Source: Paraphysomonas bandaiensis
Taxonomy: Eukaryota; Protista; Chrysophyceae
Length of the DNA: 64,000 nucleotides
Reading direction: 5' to 3'
Assembly (NCBI GenBank): GCA_965644295.1
Contig: CBFFRP010000409.1
Location: 1-64,000, forward strand
Shown here: positions 1 to 13,692 of the stretch, piece after piece
Position numbering within the stretch: position 1 is the stretch's first letter
Layout: every line of letters starts with the position of its first letter
Made by a program: the position numbers and the translations under genes
The notes under the pieces: model-generated
What the model saw: only the letters and a program-made list of their open reading frames with translations
The model's database searches: none
Told to the model about the DNA's origin: nothing

Positions 1-769
1 ACACTAATGAAGAATCCAACTTATTATTTACATCTATTAAATCATGTTTGTCACTTTGTAAGTTTGTTATGTCTGTATCATTACTTATTATTTGAGTCTT
101 CAAACTAGAAATAATATTATCCATTGTGTTTAATTCTGTTGAGTCATAAACTAATCCAGAATCCAACTTGTTATTTACATCTATTAAATCGTGTTTGTCA
201 CTTTGTAAGTTTGTTATATCTGTGTCATTGCTTGTTATTTGAGCATTCAAACTAGAAATAATATTATCAATTGTATCAGTAAAAGTGGGGTCATAAACTA
301 ATCCAGAATCTAACTTATTATTCAGATCGATTATATCATGTTTAGAATTTATATTGTTCTGTAATGCTATATCTTGGGCTTGTAAATTAGGTATATTAAT
401 TAAGTCTATATCTTGAAGAGCATCAAGACCGTTAAAACTTGCTGTTAATGTATCTAATTGTGATTGTATAGTTTCATTGGTATTTATACCGTCTAATGTT
501 TGTATTTCATTTCCAGTGAGGTTTAATAATCTTGTGTTTATATCTAATAACATATTATTTTTTGAATCTGTGAAAGCAACTGTTTGGGGTTCATTGTTTA
601 TGGTTAAGTTATTACCATTCAAGATTTCAACATTCGCTGTAAATTTAGCATTGTCTAATCTTGCATATTCCGCCATATTTAATATTACTCTTGCTGTTTC
701 AATCTGTTTATGATTTTCTGCATTGAAAATGGCATTATTGCTTGTTTTGGGCTTTGTATAAATTGACAT
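1..769 (-). CDS. Virus-like repeat protein (fibre/coiled-coil-like), runs off the left edge
   Basis: Hand translation from ATG at 769 (MSIYTKPKTSNNAIF...) is open to position 1. Contains 147-bp/49-aa repeats (DNIISSL..QI.SNDTDITNLQSDKHDLIDVNNKLDSGLVYD). AT-rich, intronless, absent from the supplied ORF track. Confidence 0.75.
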   Translation of the reverse strand, partial: MSIYTKPKTSNNAIFNAENHKQIETARVILNMAEYARLDNAKFTANVEILNGNNLTINNEPQTVAFTDSKNNMLLDINTRLLNLTGNEIQTLDGINTNETIQSQLDTLTASFNGLDALQDIDLINIPNLQAQDIALQNNINSKHDIIDLNNKLDSGLVYDPTFTDTIDNIISSLNAQITSNDTDITNLQSDKHDLIDVNNKLDSGLVYDSTELNTMDNIISSLKTQIISNDTDITNLQSDKHDLIDVNNKLDSSLV

Positions 770-961
770 CTATATATATAATACAACAACATTATTATAT
801 TCTATAATTAAATTGAGGGTTTTTAAAAAAATTGGGGGTTTTATTTCTAAAATTAAGGTTTTTTATATAAATCAAGGTTTTTATATAAAAATTGGGATTT
901 TGTCGTTTTGTTTTAGCAAAATTGGGACTTTTCAAGATTATTTTATAGCAAAATGGGTGCT

Positions 962-1021
962 ATGAGGATTCCAAACCATTGTTGTAAAGGAATTCCCCCA
1001 AAAATGGTTTGGAACCCTCAT
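962..1021. repeat. Inverted repeat/hairpin
   Basis: atgaggattccaaaccatt (962-980) pairs with aatggtttggaaccctcat (1003-1021), 18/19. Confidence 0.8.
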
Positions 1022-1485
1022 GTGTGTTAATGTGGTCCAAGCCTAGCATTAACAGTATTTGAGTTCCATTTTTTTTTTCAGAAAAACGCCTTTTTTCAAT
1101 GTGGCGGCATAGGGAATCGAACCAGATTATTTCATCTGCCGCCACAGACTATTTCATCCGGAACGACTCCAAACGTCTTTCCTAATACGTGATGACATGA
1201 TTTAAATATATAAATGTAATATTTTTAGTCTGTATATTTTCTGTTGTTTGTTGTGTTGGTGTGTATGTTGTGTTGTTGTTGTGATGCTGTTGTGTTGTTT
1301 GTGTATGAGTATATATATACATATATATATATTCATTCATAATATTCATTGTCATTGTGTCTATATCATTGTGATATATAGCAAGCATGGAAATAAAGGA
1401 AATATGATGTCATTATAAGGCATTGTCTTTGTTTGGTTATATGTGTCGTATTCATTATATTCATTGTTGTTGTTATGTAGGGTTC

Positions 1486-1992
1486 TTATTCTCTTTCACA
1501 GGCATTTGTGAAGACTCCAAAGGCTTTATTTGCTCTCTTTATTCTTGCTTGTTTTGCTTCTTCGATTGTACCAAAACTTCCAATGTGGATTTTAATGCCG
1601 TCTAATTTTATTGATGCAATCCATTTCTTTTTTCTTTTGTCATAATGTACGCCTTTTACACCTGATGTATTTGCTTTGCTCAATTTTTGGTTATAATTAT
1701 TCTCTTTGTGCGTTGCCCATCTCAAATTATTAATATTGTTGTCTATTATGTTATTATTTATATGATCTACACATGATTTGTTATCGGGATTAGGTATAAA
1801 AGCCATTGCAACTAATCGATGAATCTCAACTGTTTTTTGCTTTTTATTCAGACGTAAGTTCAATCTGTAATAACCATGTCTGCCTAATCTAGGTTTTAAT
1901 ATCTTATCTGTATTATTGTTCTTTACATTTCCTTTATTTGATATACTATAATTATTGTTGTATCCATCAATCACTTTCCATTCTTCAGCCAT
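1486..1992 (-). CDS. NUMOD4 + HNH endonuclease + AP2-like DNA-binding domain protein
   Basis: EEWKVIDGY..YSISNKGNVK (NUMOD4); HRLVAMAF..VDHIN....DNNINNLRW.T..EN (HNH); NTSGVKGV....KKWIASI......HIGSF.T.EEA..AR (AP2/ERF-like). Confidence 0.92.
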   Translation of the reverse strand: MAEEWKVIDGYNNNYSISNKGNVKNNNTDKILKPRLGRHGYYRLNLRLNKKQKTVEIHRLVAMAFIPNPDNKSCVDHINNNIIDNNINNLRWATHKENNYNQKLSKANTSGVKGVHYDKRKKKWIASIKLDGIKIHIGSFGTIEEAKQARIKRANKAFGVFTNACERE

Positions 1993-2078
1993 TGTAATAT
2001 ATATATATGTATATAATAATTTCTTTTTAAACCATTTTATATATATTTAAATTAGAATTCAAGGTTTTATGAGTTTTT

Positions 2079-2178
2079 GCTTTAAGCATATTCGCCATTA
2101 TATCACTACAACTACATTCCAGAGCTTTAAGCATATTCGCCATTATATCACTACAACTACATTCCAGAGCTTAAAGCT
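2079..2178 (+). repeat. 45-bp tandem repeat, two full copies plus a partial
   Basis: gctttaagcatattcgccattatatcactacaactacattccaga at 2079 and 2124. Confidence 0.9.
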
Positions 2179-2505
2179 TTGTCATTATACATTATTATAA
2201 AAAAGTCATATAGATAACAAAGTAGATTTAATAAGTAGTTTTTATGGTAGAATCCCGGGGTTTTACAACCTTTACAAATTTAAATTATTTTTCATTTTAA
2301 TTTTTCCCTCCCCCTATATCTACTATTAAATCTACTTATTAAATCTACTTTACTATCTATATTACTTTTTATTATAAACATTATAAATAATATATAAAGT
2401 TATTAATTTTATTTAAGAATATAAATAATATATAAAGTAATTAAAAGTTATTAATAATATATAAAGTAATTAAAAATATATAAAGTTAAATTAGCAAAGA
2501 GAAGG

Positions 2506-2535
2506 AATTACAACTGCAAGCTTGCAGTTGTAATT
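2506..2535. repeat. Perfect 30-bp palindrome
   Basis: aattacaactgcaag|cttgcagttgtaatt. Confidence 0.95.
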
Positions 2536-2671
2536 GGAAACACTCGAAGAGAAGAGCCCCTTGAGGGGTTGGGGTAGAAAAAGGCTTGTCCTTGTCCCGC
2601 CTCCCTCGTTTTTTTGATAGCAATGTTCTTCACAAATTTCCATACTACATCCATATTTAACTACATCCAAT

Positions 2672-3021
2672 TGAGTGGGAGTGTTGAGTTCTGCAATATG
2701 ATGTGATATATATTGTGCGATTGAAGTGAGTTAAGAGTGTGTAATAGGTGAAGTCACCTCATAGGTGTAACGGGTGATCATAGTTACAAAGGAATTAAAT
2801 TCAATTACTGATGTGTGACTATACAAGATATACAACTGACTGATGAACATATGATAAACAGATGTTGCTGAGAACAGATGGTTCATCAGATGTTACACGA
2901 ATATGTAGTGAAGTGTTCAGAATAATAATAATATACTTGAAAGTGCATAGTGTTCAACATAGCAAGATTAAGGTTTACGTGTATAGCAAAGTTAACTTTA
3001 GTGAAATGCCCAATTCTAACA
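2672..3021 (+). mobile_element. Copia-type polypurine tract plus 3' LTR remnant (LTR 2682-3021)
   Basis: aattgagtgggag-TGTTGAGTT matches the PPT/LTR junction of the full Copia at 31.9 kb (aattgagagggag-TGTTGAGTT). It ends in ttctaaCA like that LTR. 340 bp, interior diverged. Confidence 0.7.
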
Positions 3022-3173
3022 GTGTATAGTGTATACAAGTTATGTTCTGTAGCTTAAAATTTTTTATTGTAAGATCCGTAAAAATGATACCAGCAGGAGG
3101 GGCTTCACATTTGTAATGATTGACCGCTTTTGCTTCTATTTGATTGGCCGCTTGCTATCATGCGGGTTTGGTT

Positions 3174-3282
3174 CAGTGCCTGGTAACCGTTAGTGGTAAT
3201 GGCATTAATGGCCATTAATGCGCCATTAATGGTAATGCCATTATAATTGCCGGGACATTTGTCATTAATGCCATTATAAATT
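3174..3282 (+). mobile_element. hAT-like MITE end with CCATTAATG subterminal repeats
   Basis: Starts CAGTGCCTGGTAACC, matching the terminus of the 15498-15544 mini-element; repeated ccattaatg/ggtaatg motifs. The other end was not found. Confidence 0.5.
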
Positions 3283-3645
3283 CTCAACAAAGTCGGACTC
3301 GCACCTTTTCGTGGTGTTCTGGGGAATAAGTACCGGAGAGATTCTCTCTGGGAAACTAACGTGAGCCGCAAACATAGTCAGCAGATATTCTTCTGTCCAC
3401 TCATAGCCGAATGCTTGTGTGGTACAAGGGACACCAATAAGTGTCACTTGTGTAGACGTCTTTGGGCCCTGACGAATAAACAGGCATCCTGGAATGACAT
3501 CTGGGACAGGGACCACCTGAAGGGTAACCGGGGTATTGGGCTGCCTGCTGAAGTCAAGCATCCGGGATGTTCACCTTAAGAACTCAGAGCGGAAGTGGTA
3601 GCACCTTGGTGCTTGCGGCGACGCACACGCAGCTTCCGTAGCGTT
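3283..3645 (+). mobile_element. Structured short interspersed element (SINE/SIDE-like), copy 1
   Basis: Homologous at both ends to 59198-59496; its 3' ~60 nt is shared with 46485-46543; multiple hairpins. Confidence 0.7.
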
Positions 3646-3997
3646 TTCTCACTTGCTACCCGGAGTATTATATAGCTACTTGAGTACGTAGTTTATTATC
3701 AATTAAATTACAATTAATTGCAATTCAATTAATTGGGACAGCAAGTAATAATTTCAATTATAATTAACTACAACCTGCATCCACTAATAGACAGGTATAT
3801 GTGTTCTGTCTGATTATATTTACATAATATTGATATTACGACTACATGATTGATGACTGAAGAGTTTCACACAAGACCCTCTTATTATCAAAAAATAATC
3901 TTACAACATGATGTCAAAACCATGGAAATTAGGGCACCACTATTTCAAAGAATATACAATTTATCAATAACAAATATAATTAGCAAATGTAATCTTA

Positions 3998-6900
3998 CTA
4001 CGATGTAAATGAATCCATACTAGGCATCATATCTATCAGTTGTTGTGCGGATAGCTCCTTCGAGGAGGCAAGTATTTGCGAATCAACTCTGTCCGACACC
4101 TCTTGCAACCTTCGCTTCACTGGATCAATTTCTTGACGTATACACTCGCTCAACATTCTCATCATTTCGTCTATTTCATCCCCTGACATCCTCTGTGGAT
4201 TTGATTCGGATTTCGTTAAAACCAATGTTGGCCTCCCCACACGAGCAGATTCTATTGGGGTAGAGCTTCCGCTTTCACACCCCTCTCTCGGAGACGGTGA
4301 TGGGTCTTTGAGAGTGTCTGTGATAAACCTCTCCTGAATGAGACTAATCTTCTCCGATAGAGTTTCACTTAATTGCTTGAAGTCCGCCCTGATATCAGGG
4401 CTGGTGCGTGTGGTATCAGGGTGGTCAACAGTGAGCGTTTCCTGCGCAACCTCCACGGTTTCGTTGGAGTCTTCTGTATCACCTTGAATACCGATCGGAA
4501 ACCAGCTTACATCGCCATTCTCCATGCACTTCCGGACGTGCATTTCCACACTGTTATCGTAGTCTCTGTGTTGTTGCCATATTAGCATAGCAAAGTAGAG
4601 ATAGTTCCACATGTTGTGGCTTTGATCTCTATGTTGCTTGAACGATACCGCAGACCCGCGCTTAATGAAGTCGTGAACATCAATGCCGCATATAAAGCAT
4701 CGGTTGGCTTCGTCAGCCTCTCGTTCAACTTTCAAGTTTCGCAATTTCCCAAAAGTATCGATAATAATACCGAAGAAGATGTTCAATAGAACAACTGTAA
4801 TCTATAATAACAGTCAGTAAAACAAATAAACATCAAATTATCAACTTACAATTAAATAAAAGAACATATCCATCACAAATCTGCTCGATGTGTTAGGCTT
4901 CATATATGCTATTCCCTCATTGGCCCTCACACCATACGTGATGGCAAGTTTGTAGGTCTTCCACAGAGTATCACCCTCCATGTTGTCGAGGTCAAATTCG
5001 TCCCTGTAAAAGGTGAAGACTATTCCCGCAAATACATTCACCATTATCAAGATAATAAAAATTGCAGTTGCCAGCTGTCTTGCCGGATAAACAACAGCAT
5101 ACATTATATCTCGACTTGTAGAGTCCATCACAACGAAATCAAGCAAAAGAATAGAAGTGAAAAGATAACTCTTCCACAAGCTCAAAATAGAGACACCAAG
5201 ATAGCATATGTACCAGAAAGGCATAGGATCAGTCAGGGCAAAAATAATGGCCCACAGTTTGCTTTGCCCATTATCTATAAACGACCAGTACAGAACGGGT
5301 ACTCGAACAACCAGGTACACACTAAGAGCACAGGCAGCAAGAATGAGTTGGATTATAACTAACGCAAACACCGCGTCATCGACGTCCTGCGGCAGAGCTG
5401 TACGGTTGCTGGAGTTTACATAAAAATGACTGACCAAGAGGATATTAATGATAAAGACGTTTAAAAGCATTACCCACGAGAGATTTCGCTTTAGGTTCCA
5501 GACCCGTGATATACCATAGCTCTTGAGATTTTGGTGATGTACAGCTTCGCGGTGAAGGTCTCTAGCGATCCGCATGAAATCTTTCAATTTCAGTTCTTGT
5601 GAGGATAGGTCCACTTCCTCGACGAGACGACGTTTACTACTCTCACTGATATCCTCCGCAATACTCGGCAAATGAAAATAATGTTTATGAACTTGTTGGT
5701 TCCAAATCACCTCAATACTCGCAACTTCCTGTTTGAGAGGAGTCTTAGCATTTGCTGGGATATCCGCGTCACTGCAATTAAGTGCTTTCAGAAATACTAA
5801 ATACTTCGCTTGGAGTGGAGTCAAGTCTGTAATTTCGGCAACATTGCCGAACTCATCTACATCAGACGGCATGATTAAAACATTCAGTACGTTTAGTTCC
5901 ATAGAAATTTGTACGCGCTCAAGGACGACAGAATTATGGGGTTGGCCTTCTACAGACGCCTGCAAAACATCAATTGAGTATTCTTTCAGCGTTTCAAGGT
6001 CAGCCTCCCACTGAGCAGAATAGTGCAACAAGGACTGAGATGAGCGCACAATTCTATTAAGAGCCGATAGTAGGTTGGTGTGCAGGACGAAGTGCTCTTG
6101 GTTTCCTTTGCATGGGCCCTGCATTAGCCCCAGCATTGTATGTAACACACGAATACCAATGCGGGCGCTCACCGGTGACTCGAGACGGCTCATCAGGTCC
6201 GCATAAGACCCGAGGTAGTCAAGCAAGTTCACCCAGCGACTGTTTCCATTCTGCTCGCGGATTAAATCCTTGTTTCTTAAAAATCCACCCTCGCATATGG
6301 AGTGTAGAGCTTTAAGTACAATAACAGTATCTGGCATCTCTATTCTCTCAGCGTCGTCGTTCTTATCGTTGTTGCTTTCAGCCTCGCGCTGGCACCACAA
6401 CATTTGCTGCTCAATTAAATCTTTTATATGTTCAAAAAATAAAGTCGAGTCAGTCTCACTGAGGTAATTGAATACGGTTTGCTGCACTTCGGGGTTACCA
6501 CCATTTTTTGCAAGAAGTGCAACAAGTAGCTTCAAAGCAGCAACACTAAGTTCAGCATCAATTCCAACAGCGATCAAATCAAGACACATGACTGTTATTC
6601 CATTTGCATTCATGATAGCTTGATACCTAGACTCAGGAATCGTAATAGAGCACGTAGGGTCGGCCAGAATTTCCACTTCCACGCCAATATCCTGGTATAT
6701 CAGCAGTGTCCATGTCTCTACTAGCCATAGAGCAGTACTGACAGCAGCTCTCTCAAGATTGACAGCACCCGAGGATCGCTGAATACGGTTCCGAATGTGA
6801 GAAGAGACTCGCATTAACAGTCCCTCTAACCTGACATCATATTCCACATTATCTTTCACACTAGGGAGTTGCTCGAAAATCTGCATCGCAGATGCATAGT

Positions 6901-9900
6901 ATACTTGCTTCTGTTCACTAATACTGCTCAAAAAAGTAAAATACTGCTTTCTGTAGAACGCCTCGTGAATTGCATCCGCGGCAACATTGACGCTCTTCTT
7001 CGCCTCAAATTTGCGAATTTTAGACGGGCTTAAAGGCACCGCCTCGGCCCCTCTTGTCTCACCACCAAAATTTTCATCATCCTCATCTGGCACTAAGTAA
7101 TCCAGAATCGCAATTGCGCCATCATATAAATTCGTCAATTTCGGTCCGAGCTTAGAACTGTGTGTGGATCGCATGGTCTTCACTGCATACATCAGTCTAG
7201 CAATCAGTTTCTGAATGTCTTCTTCAGTCCGTCGAGTGGGCTGGAAAGAAGTTTCGTTTTCAAATATAGTAGCGTCTCTAAATGCCATGAAGTCAAACGA
7301 CTCAAAAAACGATACGATCAACGTCAACAAGATCTGCATCCACTCAGCGTGTTGAAACCTCAATGCAGATTTTTCTTTGGTAAAGTAACTTGGGAGGGTA
7401 TCCCGCGCATCTTCAAAAAACTCTCCGCAAGAATCAAAAAATAGCCAAAGCGACTCTGATCCTTCAAGACCATCTACCCTTGTTTCAACAATCTCCATGA
7501 GCAATATTCCTAGACCCCTCTTCACATTGTAAAGAGTAGTGGGGTCGAGAATAGCAGATACGATATCTTCAATGGCAAAGACAGCTTGAAGTTTTTGTCC
7601 AAGCTTACATCCAGCAAGAAGGGTGAGAAGATTTATGTGGTACTGTAAATCACTGGGTAGATCTCGGTCCTCCAAAGGGTATTGTGAATCTACGAAAGCA
7701 CTCATTGCATCCCGACGCTCTCTATACCCAGGGCTATCCAAGCTATCACACCAGTCAATAAGGTACTGTGCTCTGTCACTATTCGTAACATATCGAGATA
7801 TTTCACTCCGTAGTGACATAATGCCACTATCGCCACTATCAGACACATCAGTCAATCCAATCAGCAGGTCCAAGTATTCTGGTTTGCGCCCGTTAGAAAT
7901 AATTTTCTGTATCATCGAAGAGACAAAGCTGCGTGGACATTGTTTTATAAGACTCCTGTTCCCAGACACTATTGCACGAACAACTTTCGAGCTGTACATT
8001 CCATCATCGATTCTATCAATGAACCAGTCAATGTGGTGAAAAGCTACATTTTGATTAGTTTCATTGTAATCGACGAAGAGAACGATAACATCATTACATG
8101 CACACACTATTTCCGATATCCTTGGGTCCATCTGTCCTATCGCACCATCGAGAAGTGCTCGTTGTAGAATCATGAAAACAGACATAGCATCCATGTTATA
8201 TAGGAGCTGCTGAATTTCCTCATCACTGGAGTGTGTTGAGTAACAATCAAATTTTTTCTGTTCCGGTTTCTTCTTTATGTAGTTCGCTATCTCCTTCAAT
8301 GTGTACAACAGACGCTGGGCAGCCTCGACGTCAGTGTCTGTATCAAAATCTCCCCAAAGTTCAAAGGATTCAGCACATATCTTTATATTTTTCAAATCCT
8401 CAACTAAATTCTTGTAAATATTTTCGAGCTTTGAAGAATAAATAATCTGAACTCTACGAGCCGTTGACAGGAAAATTCCTTCGTGACACACATGTACCAT
8501 CAACAGCCTCAAAGCCTCTTGAACAAGAACCGGTTCAGAGTACATGAGCACATCAACGAGAACATCGCCAAACTCGTGGGGAAACGTAGTTGACAGATTA
8601 TTTGCCAAGCAGAGCTGGTGATAAACTTCACGAGGATTACCTGCCTTATTTCTAATGGAGTCATCAAACCACAACGAGAACTTCTGAATTAACATTCCTA
8701 GCTTTCTATCCTGCAGTCGATCGTGAACAATAGACATGACTCGCATTATTCCAGTTATCGTTCGTGCTTCATACTCTGTCATTGCATTGTAGCGAGTTGG
8801 TAGTTCATACGGCTCGAATACTGTTGCCTTATGGGCAATTCTACGCAGCAAACGAGCGGCCCGAAATAAACGCGCCAGACGAAGAATACGCAATACACTA
8901 AGTATTTAAGGTTAAGGCAACCTTGCAGCAAGACAACAACTTACCGCAATGTCTTCGCAAACTTAGCAGCACTGAAACCCGCATGCACTGTAGCACTTCC
9001 GTAACAAAGCATAGCTACGTCTAATACAACCTATACGCAAGTGTAAGAACTAAAGCAATAGCCGTAACATACTTACAACAACCACATCCAGTAGCCTGTA
9101 CGGATTTGTCACGAAACTTGCTATCTCAGAATGTACGACAAAGTTGCAGTACATCCGAAATGCTAATTCAGAAATAAAAAATATTGACACCCCAAGATCA
9201 ACATTGGTAAGCAAGTAAGTGTATTTATTTCCAGAAAATACATTTGCCAGATCAAGAGCAGTCATAACTGTGGTACCAATTACGAGTAGCAAAATGAAAC
9301 ATATAAACCGAAAAGATTCCATCAGATTTAACGCTGTTTCTTGCCAATTAACCAGTGAACCGCCAACATTGGATTCGTAAGTCTCCATGCGACTCAAATT
9401 CCTTATATTTTTGCCACTTCGTGCTGAGCTGGACCGACTCAATCTGGTTGAGCGCTGTTTAATTGATAACGCCTTCCTGGATCTACTCGATTCTTCAGGA
9501 GCGACGCTGTTAAAGGCACTGGGTGCGGCGATACCAAACACTTTCTTTACAAACGACACATCGCGGTCCTTACTCTCGGGGACAACTTTATGATCTGAAT
9601 TACTCCAAAAATGCCCCAAAAAACTCTTATTACGAGGTGATACATCCATCGGTTTAGAGGCCGCAGTTGTAGTGGTGTCGCTCTGAAAGCTCTGTAGGCC
9701 TTGTCCCATAAAAAGCCTTCTGTTCGGCTTCCTGTGATCATCTAAAGCTTGGGTCAATGGGACAATAATATCTTCTAACTGAGAAACTTTATTATAAAAT
9801 CCAAATTTGATAAGTGCCAAAAGAAGGTCAATCATCTCGGCAGAAAGCTCATCACACTGGCTGGTATCAAGGTCATCGTTGATATAATCGGATATTATCT

Positions 9901-12900
9901 GCTGCAGAAGCCCGAATGCATATGCCGACCCTTCGTGGTGATCATGAAATGAGTTCTCCTCTCCTCCTTCCAAGGACACAGAGGTTCGTATTAATCGCGG
10001 AAACTTGGCTTCCACTTGGGGATCTCGGTCCACATATAAACATCTGATAAGTCGGCACACTGGCGCCTTGAACCTGCTCGATGAGCAGGGCATTTTCAAC
10101 ATGGTTATCAACATCTCGTAGGGGTACTGTCGTTCTACGAGGTTCATAGCAACGTAGTTTCTATCAAGGCAAAGGTCCGCAAGAAGATAGAGTTGACCAC
10201 AAAAATAGTCAGCAACTTGCAACTTTCTCTCCATGGTGGATCTAGAGTTGTTTTTTTGACCCTTCCACTTCAGTCGGGCTTTACTATTTATTGAATTCCT
10301 GGTACCCCGCTTGATGGCAGTAGATGTCCTGCAGTCAATGAATCCACAATAATGGAGAGGTTGCCAGTCAACATACCTCCTCATCCCAGCAACTGTGATG
10401 CTACTCGGTCTTCTGCTCACATCAGCGTTCACTTTGCGAACAATCTCTCTCCTCTCTTCAATAGGTGAGGTGAGCTTGGATTTCTCAAAACTATGAAACC
10501 ATTAACAAATCAACTCAACACGTGTGAGCAATATACCTTGTCAGTGTGCATATGCAGTCATAAGGCATATCCTTCATAAACCCAAATAAATGGAGCATGC
10601 CCAATACATCTTCTTGTGCGACTTCCCAATTAAGGATCAGCCGGGGAAGGCCATCAGTTACCAGGGAATATCCCATCACAGTATCGTCATTTTTGACCTC
10701 AGGGAGATATATAGTTTTTGTTGACCAAGGAATCGTCTTCAATGCAGTGTAAATATGTAGAGTTTGTAAAATAAAAATAAGTTTATACCTTAAGCTTGTT
10801 ATTCTTGCTCATCTCAATTTTGATCAACAGGCTTCGCGATAACGACGCTCCAGAGAATACGTACGAACTTCGAATATTGGTAAAGGGGGCATTGGGGGTG
10901 GTCATCATTGCCGAAGGGCGTATAATTTTCTTCTCAGATTCAGGGCTAAATGGTTCAACCGGGGGCACAGCAGAAGCAGCAGCTGTGGCAGTGGAAGTGG
11001 TCTCCCCACAGTCATCACTGCTTTCAATTGGAAATAAAGGTGTACCTTTACCACCATTAGCACGTGTGCTGTACACAGATACAAAGAGAGCACTCGCGAC
11101 CATACGCTGAGTGCTATCCACCCCCATCGGACACGAACATGCGCTCTGTACATGCGGTACATATTATCAAAGGAATAAGAGCAAATAGTTCCAGTATAAT
11201 TACCCGGAGAAGGTTAAGTAGAGTCACATTCATTTCGGACTCCTCTAACAGTTGGAGAAATATTCCAATCTCACGCTCGCGCACCTGAAACAGAATGGTG
11301 ACACAGCGACCAACACACTTTTACATAATGTACCTTCGTTTGCAACATCTGTAGATTGTCTCTAAGCATTTCTTGAACACACACCACTGCTAATTCCTGG
11401 TCCTTCACCTGATGATAAAAACAATTGGTCAGGTAGAACTAAGGATACTAACTAACTGTATTGCACCTGATTCAAGAGTACAGGGAACTTGTCTGCAATG
11501 TACATTTGGTTCGAGTGGTTGTCATGAATAATTGCCAAGAGTGACTTAAAGCAAGCCGTCGATATATCTTGCGAGAGAGATCGTAAATTCTTCTCTATCT
11601 CCTCGATATCTCCTTCTTCATCCTCGTCAAATGTATCTGGTTCTTTACAGGACTCTCTGTCGTAAGGGGAACTTGTTTCTACGGTGAGGTTTCTAGGTCG
11701 ACTTGGCAGAACACTGGCGTTCTCCTGCTCAAAGGAAAAAGTTCTAATCCTCCCAAAGTTATGATTAGCTCGGGCAGAGCTTTTCATAGCGACAGAAGAA
11801 GCAGCACTGGATAGCAAAACTTTTCTGGTGTTTTGAAGTGGGGATTGAGTGTCTCCTCCGATTGATGACATTTGGGATAGGAGAGATTTAAATGATCCTT
11901 TCCGAGATAAAGACCTCAGTCCAGGGGCCTTCATTGACTTCATGCGCTCTCTCTGTCTGCGCACATTGTCCGGTAATTGCTCAAAGGTTCTGTCTCCACA
12001 TAGTTCGATGAGATCCAGCAGTGCGCCTAGAACACCCTGTTCCCGCATCATGGTTTGTCGGATGATAGTGGAGCGAGCGTTGGAAGAGTCAGACACTGCT
12101 GTTGATCCAGGCCCAGAAGTGGCATGCATTGCATCCAACAAATCATCAGTCAAAAAATCAAAAACCGTCTCTAGCACGCCAAATACGTTTTTAACGGCCG
12201 TCTCAATGTACCCAAGAGACTCACCAAAGATTTGTTTTGATCGACATGATTTTTCAAAAGCTCTAAGATGCTTCGCAGCCTCCACACCCAAAAAGAGATC
12301 AACGCCTAGAGTCTGATGCAGCTGGTTACTTATACATACATACGAGGCAAGAGTATGTTCTGGCACAGCAGCACACTTCCGATGCGATTGAATGTCAGAC
12401 TGCCGATGAGTGTGGCTACGAGCGCGGACCATATGCCCGCCTTGTGCCCGAGCGGCATTCCCGGCCAGCATCTGAGGACAACCAGTGGATCGTGCCACTG
12501 CTGAGCTGACTACAGATTGACGGGATGTAATTACAGGAGTGTGCAACCACTGTCCACGAGAGTGCAATTGAACCATGGTACCCTCTGGGAGTCCCCTGCT
12601 GTCAGAGGCCTGGGACGAGACCACATCGAAGAAAGAACACTCTTCTCGACCTTGTACCGCCTTCAACTGCCCGTTTTCCATTCGAAGATATAGGCCAGTG
12701 TTCAAATTACGCAATGCCACTCGTTCACCTCGCGTAGCAATAGCACCGCCCTTGGCAGTTTTCTCTTTCTCAAGCATCCAAAGTAGATGTGTACCCACTG
12801 AACAGTTGGGTGAGTCCAGAGAAAGTAGCGATGTATGCAGCAAAGAAACTTTGTTCGAGGTAGAAGCTTGGCCTGAGGAAACTTCTGGAGCAATGTATGA

Positions 12901-13692
12901 TGACGACTCGGGCTCCTGCAGAGTGACCATCTGTCCCCCAAGAATACACTTTGAGACAGCATCGCTTGCGTGCTGGTACACCGACACCGTCCAGCAAGAG
13001 CTCTCCAAGGAGCAGTTAATCTCTCGTCCACCTGACTTAAGCATTTTTTTGGCGCTGTGAATAAATTCACTCGGCCGCTCATGCACACGTAGCAAGCATT
13101 CGGAGCTACTAGCAATGTGCTGCCCTTCCCTATCTGCTTTGGATCGAGGCATGAATACTAACCAGCTGAAAGAATCACCGTAACCCTCCAATGATACACG
13201 GATGTTCTCACGCTCATGTTTCGCGAGAACAGAAGCATTAACCGTTAAAAATTTCTTCGACTTCACATGGCGCAGCTGTATGACATCTCCAAAAGCAACT
13301 GGCTTTCCTACTTTCATCGCCATAAGCTTCTCGTTCAGGCGTCCTTCATTTGTGGCTGCCCGATGTAACTGATTGATAAATTCATCAGATGTCGCTGGCT
13401 TATTTACAGCGGGTTTATCAGCAGCGTCTCCATCATGTGGCTCAGCTAGTGTTTGTCCCTCCATCATAGCGGAAAAAAGCACCTCTTCATACTCTCTGAC
13501 GGCACTATACTGGTTTTGTACATGCACTTCCCATAAACAGTTCTCAAAATAATCCTCATCCTTCGTAAGAATAACATCTTCACTAATTATTCCTTCCGCA
13601 CTTAGCCATCCTTCTATTGGCTTGGAGTGTCTTAGAGTGACATAGTCTCCTATCTTTAACCCGAGAGGTAATACTTGATTATTGAAAGCCAT
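3998..13692 (-). CDS. IP3 receptor/ryanodine receptor-family Ca2+ release channel (~3,100 aa, 8 exons) with an inserted voltage-sensor domain
   Basis: N-terminal beta-trefoil/MIR motifs (FGDVIQLRHVKSKKFL, LRNLNTGLYL); RIH-like RQTMMREQG; QLYLLADLCLDRNY; FGFY; RIH-associated CEG..QGPCKGNQ; 6-TM pore with GVRANEG; LNIFFGIIIDTFGKLR; CFICG..H..HNMWNYLYF zinc finger. ORF-track pieces are joined by short GT-AG introns (e.g. 4802-4849, 8898-8944, 9031-9076). Confidence 0.93.

Follow-up and report, generated by a model that had tools for sequence, protein, structure and literature searches.

Inositol 1,4,5-trisphosphate (IP3) receptors (IP3Rs) and ryanodine receptors (RyRs) are the standard examples of ligand-gated release channels, on which voltage acts only via a separate protein, as when CaV1.1 acts on RyR1. 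The gene described here, from the chrysophyte Paraphysomonas bandaiensis, carries a complete voltage-sensing domain (VSD) inside one IP3R-family polypeptide. It lies within a stretch of 64,000 nucleotides (contig CBFFRP010000409.1 of assembly GCA_965644295.1, positions 1 to 64,000), which is referred to as the window. The architecture itself is beyond reasonable doubt. The product would be a single-chain voltage-coupled release channel in which the voltage sensor acts on the IP3R-type pore, a reading of the sequence that is given a probability of roughly 0.6.

Animal ITPR1-3 show the same order of beta-trefoil/MIR, RIH, RIH, RIH_assoc, six-transmembrane (6-TM) pore, S6, and C-terminal zinc finger, and matches of the window gene in the PDB are better to them than to RyR. 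They have no voltage sensor, whereas the window gene has a charged S1-S4 in the central linker region, mostly changed IP3 contacts, and a lost Glu of the Ca2+ site. In skeletal muscle, the CaV1.1-RyR1 pair also places a giant RIH-family release channel under a Cav/Nav-type sensor, a control that is presumed in the window protein. The muscle system consists of two mechanically coupled proteins in two apposed membranes, whereas the window gene encodes one chain, presumably in one membrane. Ci-VSP and TPTE/TPTE2 resemble the insert in having a stand-alone, poreless S1-S4 and a cytosolic effector reached via a short post-S4 linker. Their effector is a phosphatase; that of the window protein is a channel scaffold, and its sensor lies within the chain, flanked by polypeptide at either end. 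Another portable-sensor precedent is the sperm Na+/H+ exchanger SLC9C1, where a sensor is fused to a transport protein; there the host is different and the sensor follows the transporter domain, whereas the window sensor is inserted in a cytosolic solenoid. Kv, Nav, Cav, EukCat, and TPC channels share the homologous S1-S4, the charge-transfer centre, and the S3 N..D motif, but the window sensor is not followed by an S4-S5 linker and an S5-S6 pore.

In stramenopiles, oomycete ITPR homologues and PKDRR channels combine domains in unusual ways and show little conservation of the IP3 sites; PKDRR channels are polycystin-type, and the papers on these genes report no voltage sensor in an ITPR (PMC4820453, PMC7399828, PMC9694693). 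A full-text literature search, which included oomycete and diatom calcium-channel reviews and a comparative study of calcium in the endoplasmic reticulum (ER) and had most subscription journals outside its coverage, found no voltage sensor in an IP3R/RyR-type protein. The view of the initial annotation that this architecture had not been described is in line with that result.

According to the same annotation, removal of two short introns yields an in-frame S1-S4 with an FxxExxxR motif in S2 and nine K/R in S4. All of these elements are read directly in the sequence, the nine basic residues of S4 standing in register. Conservation of the charge system was counted in an alignment of 46 sensor segments from relatives. 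In S2, the Phe is present in 43/46 segments, an acid (D/E) three residues after it in 46/46, and Arg/Lys in 45/46. The corresponding figures in S3 are 39/46 for the Asn, 46/46 for the Asp, and 43/46 for a second Asp. Seven positions of S4, at every third residue, are basic in 87-100% of the relatives. This conservation speaks for selection on the domain as a voltage sensor. The window sensor spans three exons, which were searched singly, and intron-free paralogues and database proteins supply the evidence on fold and Pfam score for an uninterrupted sensor. The profile of the 46 relatives meets the S1-S3 exon piece of the window with an expectation value (E) of 1.6e-23 and the S4-plus-tether piece with 9.7e-25; the window sensor matches far beyond chance. 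In the PDB, the family profile finds all four sensors of Cav3.2 and Cav1.x, Nav sensors, TPTE2 (5e-15), NavAb chimeras, NALCN, and Kv7/Kv2, with whole-chain E-values to Cav/Nav down to 1e-41, and it matches no pore in this structure search. A PDB search with the S1-S3 exon of the window alone gives only TPTE2 (E 3.6).

AlphaFold2, run with the family alignment on the paralogue segment L009:7827-8414, produced the expected helices with a predicted local distance difference test score (pLDDT) of 85.9, and the VSD fold that had been anticipated was obtained in this paralogue. The top 50 rows of a Foldseek search with the model are all voltage-gated channels, though their E-values exceed 1e-3. By VIA-align, the model superposes on VSD-IV of Cav3.2 with Z 14.4 and a root-mean-square deviation of 2.3 Å over 126 residues, and on the isolated Ci-VSP sensor with Z 13.2.

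Both peptides quoted in the initial annotation as flanking the insert are present, and the position of the sensor in the host was defined by alignment, which bears out the proposed placement between two IP3R segments. In a 761-residue stretch of P0016, the first 195 residues correspond to ITPR2 718-889, residues 355-476 to Cav sensors, and residues 568-643 to ITPR2 1060-1135. Arg743 of hIP3R3 lies in the central linker domain (CLD) and Glu1122/1125 in ARM2 (PMC10613215), so that the sensor falls in the first CLD segment or at the CLD/ARM2 border. S4 is followed by a tether and IP3R scaffold, with no S5-P-S6 pore, and the Pfam Ion_trans match ends at about position 112-117 of 241. The insert is a bona fide, charge-complete, poreless VSD. 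The tether of about 25 residues is almost gap-free in the family, its motif being conserved as W/Y/F in 44/46, P in 44/46, R in 45/46, and Y in 42/46 segments. The linker upstream of the sensor is long and variable (about 90-160 residues) and Ser/Arg-rich.

Within the RIH channel family, the host protein is of the IP3R type and retains an intact pore of its own. Exon 1 gives Pfam matches to Ins145_P3_rec (6e-26), MIR, and the first RIH domain (3e-8), and the scores of RIH, the second RIH, and RIH_assoc all pass the curated Pfam cut-offs. The N-terminal region matches IP3R1 structures with E 6e-18 versus 7e-6 for RyR2. At the other end, S6 and the zinc-finger tail encoded by exon 10 match IP3R3 2505-2652 with E 2e-19 versus 1.5e-10 for RyR; together with the IP3R3 match of S1-S5 (Table 1), this bears out the expectation that the normal C-terminal 6-TM pore is kept. 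SPRY and RyR-repeat domains gave no Pfam matches in the window gene; given this and the PDB scores favouring IP3R, the gene is not a RyR in the strict sense.

The gene model is supported by transcripts. All nine introns are GT..AG, and an exon-by-exon frame check found each exon stop-free in its own phase. Contigs of four public runs were mapped to positions 6200-11700. Eight of the nine introns are confirmed as joints in transcript contigs: the two introns inside the sensor appear as exact joints where they had been proposed, and six further introns are found in the same contig set. All contig joints have GT..AG ends on the strand of the gene, and one of the runs lacking the intron inside S4 is a marine metatranscriptome recorded as RNA. 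A contig of 6146 nt, from which all introns are missing, covers 7272 to a point past 11700; therefore a single mRNA joins the pre-sensor scaffold and the sensor to the second RIH region. In this contig the sensor exons are retained and both flanks are joined, so that the locus is not two genes. The coordinates are collected in Table 1.

Table 1. The sensor-bearing IP3R-family gene: coding region, selected exons and introns, and protein segments, in window positions.
Feature	Position	Strand	Remarks
Whole coding region	3998..13692	minus	10 exons, 9243 nt including stop, about 3080 residues; IP3R-family subunit with inserted VSD
Exon 1	11467..13692	minus	N-terminal beta-trefoil/MIR region and start of first RIH domain
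Exon 7	9077..10328	minus	Pre-insert scaffold helices (about ITPR2 718-889), Ser/Arg-rich linker of about 130 residues, S1, S2, first half of S3
S1	9251..9313	minus	Hydrophobic; no family-conserved charge
S2	9149..9202	minus	Outer Asp and Phe..Glu...Arg charge-transfer motif
S3	9077-9106 and 9007-9030	minus	Split by intron 9031-9076
Intron inside S3, 46 nt	9031..9076	minus	GTAAGT..TAG, frame kept; spliced out in runs X8 and X10
Exon 8, 86 nt	8945..9030	minus	Second half of S3, S3-S4 loop, first S4 charges; in transcript contigs; in register in family alignment
S4	8945-8964 and 8840-8897	minus	Basic residues spaced three apart
Intron inside S4, 47 nt	8898..8944	minus	GTAAGT..TAG, frame kept; Arg codon split CG|T; spliced out in 4/4 runs
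Post-S4 tether	8762..8839	minus	Conserved aromatic..P.RY motif, runs into next scaffold helix
Second RIH domain	7853..8212	minus	Pfam RYDR_ITPR 2e-9
RIH_assoc domain (ARM3)	6050..6319	minus	Holds Ca2+-site motifs; Pfam 3.8e-10
Juxtamembrane region and pore-domain S1-S5	4985..5740	minus	S4 uncharged; IP3R3 1963-2219 (entry 6uqk numbering), E 1e-12
Intron	4802-4849	minus	Predicted only
Exon 10	3998..4801	minus	S6 gate helix, C-terminal Cys/His zinc-finger motif, tail

Some features of the locus concern its reading and assembly. An in-frame, stop-free intron of 48 nt (about 10329-10376) is hidden within the long open reading frame (ORF) 9050-10432 and had been missed in the initial annotation; an ORF-based reading adds 16 false residues. 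At 7230-7272, the contigs break off in both X8 and X10, leaving 28-29 letters at their loose ends unmatched, whereas a contig of X11 spans this point. The cause may be an assembly break, a variant, or an alternative form. The G+C content of window positions 1-4000 is 31.5% versus 40-45% elsewhere in the window.

The own genome (62.6 Mb in 669 contigs) was searched for related genes. It holds eight genes of this type, the window gene and seven more, and the sensor profile matches all eight. In six paralogues, the sensor, RIH, and RIH_assoc lie within single stop-free frames of 1900-2256 residues. Hence the ORF track conceals the domain, as had been remarked, in the window copy only and not in these six. 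Ion_trans scores in the paralogue frames reach 58, 40, and 38 bits against a cut-off of 25 (best E 1e-15) and cover profile positions of about 4-117 of 241, which is the S1-S4 half. The paralogue C426 is apparently interrupted at the same profile position as the S4 intron of the window gene. The genome also contains sensor-less RIH-family genes, on contigs C395 (121459-130116) and C144; that on C395 has an open frame of 2886 residues with Ins145_P3_rec and RIH_assoc and without the sensor.

An exhaustive phmmer search of 1.8 billion representatives returned 367 relatives, and about 100 database proteins have the same design. The proposed search for the same insertion in other proteins was therefore productive, three chrysophytes being among the sources. 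In the full-length database proteins, the domain order is Ins145_P3_rec - RIH - Ion_trans (S1-S4) - RIH - RIH_assoc - pore, and an Ion_trans score of 44 bits, above the Pfam cut-off, is found in a relative. Three chrysophytes, Epipyxis sp., Chlorochromonas danica, and Dinobryon divergens, and one MMETSP transcript make up the named members; the rest come from metagenomic or run assemblies. The nearest named relatives are chrysophytes, with about 35-45% identity. In a search with the family profile, the sensor was absent from the Platysulcus IP3R-like protein and from insect RyRs. Ordinary insect RyRs do carry the label PF00520, which in them refers to the pore and is not matched by the sensor profile, so that precomputed Pfam labels are not diagnostic for the sensor. 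A feature search of the ESM Atlas yielded nothing beyond generic Ion_trans fragments.

A maximum-likelihood tree of 65 rows (LG+G4, quick search) was built from the post-sensor region only. Every one of the 57 sensor-bearing rows belongs to a single starred clade of 60, which comprises two old subclades (A and B), and the copies of this genome occur in both. The tree, whose root is set by distant RyRs and which comes from a quick search, fits a single old gain of the sensor. Three proteins nested in the sensor clade (P0062, P0119, and P0129) have no S1-S4 and keep the tether motif; they represent either secondary losses or gene models that skip the sensor exons. One further protein, P0137 (L020:769-9987; GCA_902530625.1, CACAAY010000006.1), is IP3R-like, has 3072 residues in a single 9.2-kb ORF, and branches outside the family of the window gene. 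Its sensor is placed after the second RIH domain and before RIH_assoc (Ion_trans at 2229-2367, profile positions 3-110 of 241), and the S3/S4 sequence is of a different character, probably EAG/HCN-like. In P0137, a voltage sensor may therefore have been captured a second time and independently, and this second, different insertion suggests that the pairing of sensor and IP3R is useful.

The agonist sites of the window gene are altered. The residues that contact IP3 are, in IP3R1, R265, T266, T267, G268, R269, R504, K508, R511, Y567, R568, and K569. Nine of these eleven differ in the window gene (11467-13692), where only the equivalents of T267 and R511 are kept. The changes are, in IP3R1 numbering, R265L, T266H, G268S, R269L, R504I, K508T, Y567N, R568H, and K569S. 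Judged by these contact residues, the window gene would provisionally not be an IP3 receptor in the strict, IP3-gated sense. The Ca2+-activation site of hIP3R3 consists of Glu1882, Glu1946, and Gln1949, both Glu residues being in ARM3 (PMC10613215), and the published numbering of the site agrees with the present alignments. The motifs of this site were mapped via a paralogue; a phmmer search of the PDB with the RIH_assoc stretch of the window gave no match. In the window gene, the first Glu and the Gln are kept and the second Glu is replaced by Gly. The equivalent of E1946 is lost in every subclade-B row with a locatable QGPC motif (21/30), the window gene belonging to B, and kept in 26/27 subclade-A rows and in 5/5 outgroup rows.

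The mechanism that may be proposed begins with a product that would be one subunit of a tetrameric IP3R-family cation channel, with 10 transmembrane helices per subunit, four of the sensor and six of the pore domain. The initial annotation had left the sensor in the same membrane as the pore or in an apposed one. Since the transmembrane segments of one chain enter one bilayer co-translationally, sensor and pore would share that bilayer and an apposed membrane is unlikely. The sensor would then read the voltage across the membrane of its own pore. Movement of S4 would be transmitted through the short, length-conserved tether to the helical scaffold. In animal IP3Rs, this scaffold relays ligand-driven movements to the gate. 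By this route, voltage would open the channel or set its open probability. The shared membrane, the coupling through the tether, and the effect of voltage on gating are all inferred. In subclade B, where most IP3 contacts and one Glu of Ca2+ activation are lost, the channel may be triggered mainly by voltage; subclade A, its sister, has an intact Ca2+ site, and there voltage and Ca2+ may act jointly. A more specific version is put forward tentatively, at somewhat less than even odds: a voltage-gated Ca2+-release channel formed by a single chain in one membrane, whose sensor in subclade B has taken the place of IP3, and in part of Ca2+, as the primary trigger, and which arose at least twice, in view of the differently placed second insertion in P0137.

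The voltage-gating reading is strengthened by the conservation of the charge system and by the loss of agonist-site residues. Several points weigh against it. ER membranes are usually near 0 mV. The fold and the above-cut-off Pfam score come from paralogues and not from the three-exon sensor of the window itself, whose S1-S3 piece (9077-9346) alone reaches only 18.8 bits with Ion_trans, below the cut-off of 25 (E 1e-3, profile positions 4-75). Accordingly, an Ion_trans match between the RIH regions, which had been expected of the spliced protein, is found in the paralogues and full-length relatives, and in the window's own piece it stays below threshold. The alignment of the IP3 contacts is weak in the helical half, and the contact loss is to that extent provisional. 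Predicted docking of the P0010 sensor on its pore domain gave support neither way.

Other explanations may be considered. The VSD might no longer sense voltage and serve as a membrane anchor or scaffold that pins a peripheral cytosolic domain, or as a lipid-binding module, while other ligands gate the channel. A VSD fold alone does not show function, the upstream linker is long and variable as in a tethered module, and the ER voltage is probably small. Yet an anchor needs no charges, whereas conservation across two old subclades is 87-100% for the seven S4 basic residues, the Phe/Glu/Arg of S2, and both Asp of S3, and buried charges are costly unless they are used; this explanation is doubtful. 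It is likewise unlikely that the sensor responds to voltage and controls clustering, trafficking, partner binding, or the response to another ligand instead of the pore. The insert does sit in the peripheral scaffold, distant in sequence from the pore, and sensors are known to drive non-pore effectors, as in the VSP phosphatase and the SLC9C1 exchanger. The Pfam scan of the window gene found no added enzymatic or binding domain. In animal IP3Rs, moreover, activation involves movement of the flanking CLD and ARM2 (PMC13433952, PMC10613215), and a pull exerted there would be expected to reach the gate.

The four helices could also form an ion path of their own, an Hv1-like proton or omega current that supplies counter-charge during Ca2+ release. 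Ca2+ release needs a counter-ion flux, and VSDs such as Hv1 can conduct. This is nevertheless very improbable: the full S4 charge ladder and the S2 Phe plug are intact, as is typical of non-conducting sensors, and there is no conserved D/E inside S1, the site of the Hv1 selectivity Asp. For lack of such an acidic residue, the Hv1-like proton path was rejected. Practically no weight is left to a gene-model artefact, in which two neighbouring genes or a pseudo-exon would have been misread as one protein. What speaks for it is that the domain of the window copy is split by two introns and becomes readable only after splicing; but the contigs are spliced as predicted and span both flanks, and six paralogues and many database proteins, as well as P0137 with its single ORF, hold the sensor in one open frame. 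The two-gene artefact is refuted by the spliced contigs and the open-frame paralogues.

If the single-chain voltage-coupled release channel is real, excitation-release coupling, which takes two proteins and two membranes in muscle, would be built into one polypeptide and one membrane. A natural family with a built-in sensor would represent a new route from excitability to store release. It would also offer a compact model of how motion of a peripheral scaffold reaches the gate of very large channels, and a possible template for tools of voltage-controlled Ca2+ release. The finding raises the question of where in these algae, in which endomembrane or in the plasma membrane, there is a voltage that a sensor could usefully read. 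The family has a wide distribution among ochrophyte-type protists of marine and fresh waters, and its transcripts occur in ocean samples; it is therefore likely to matter for the physiology of these protists.

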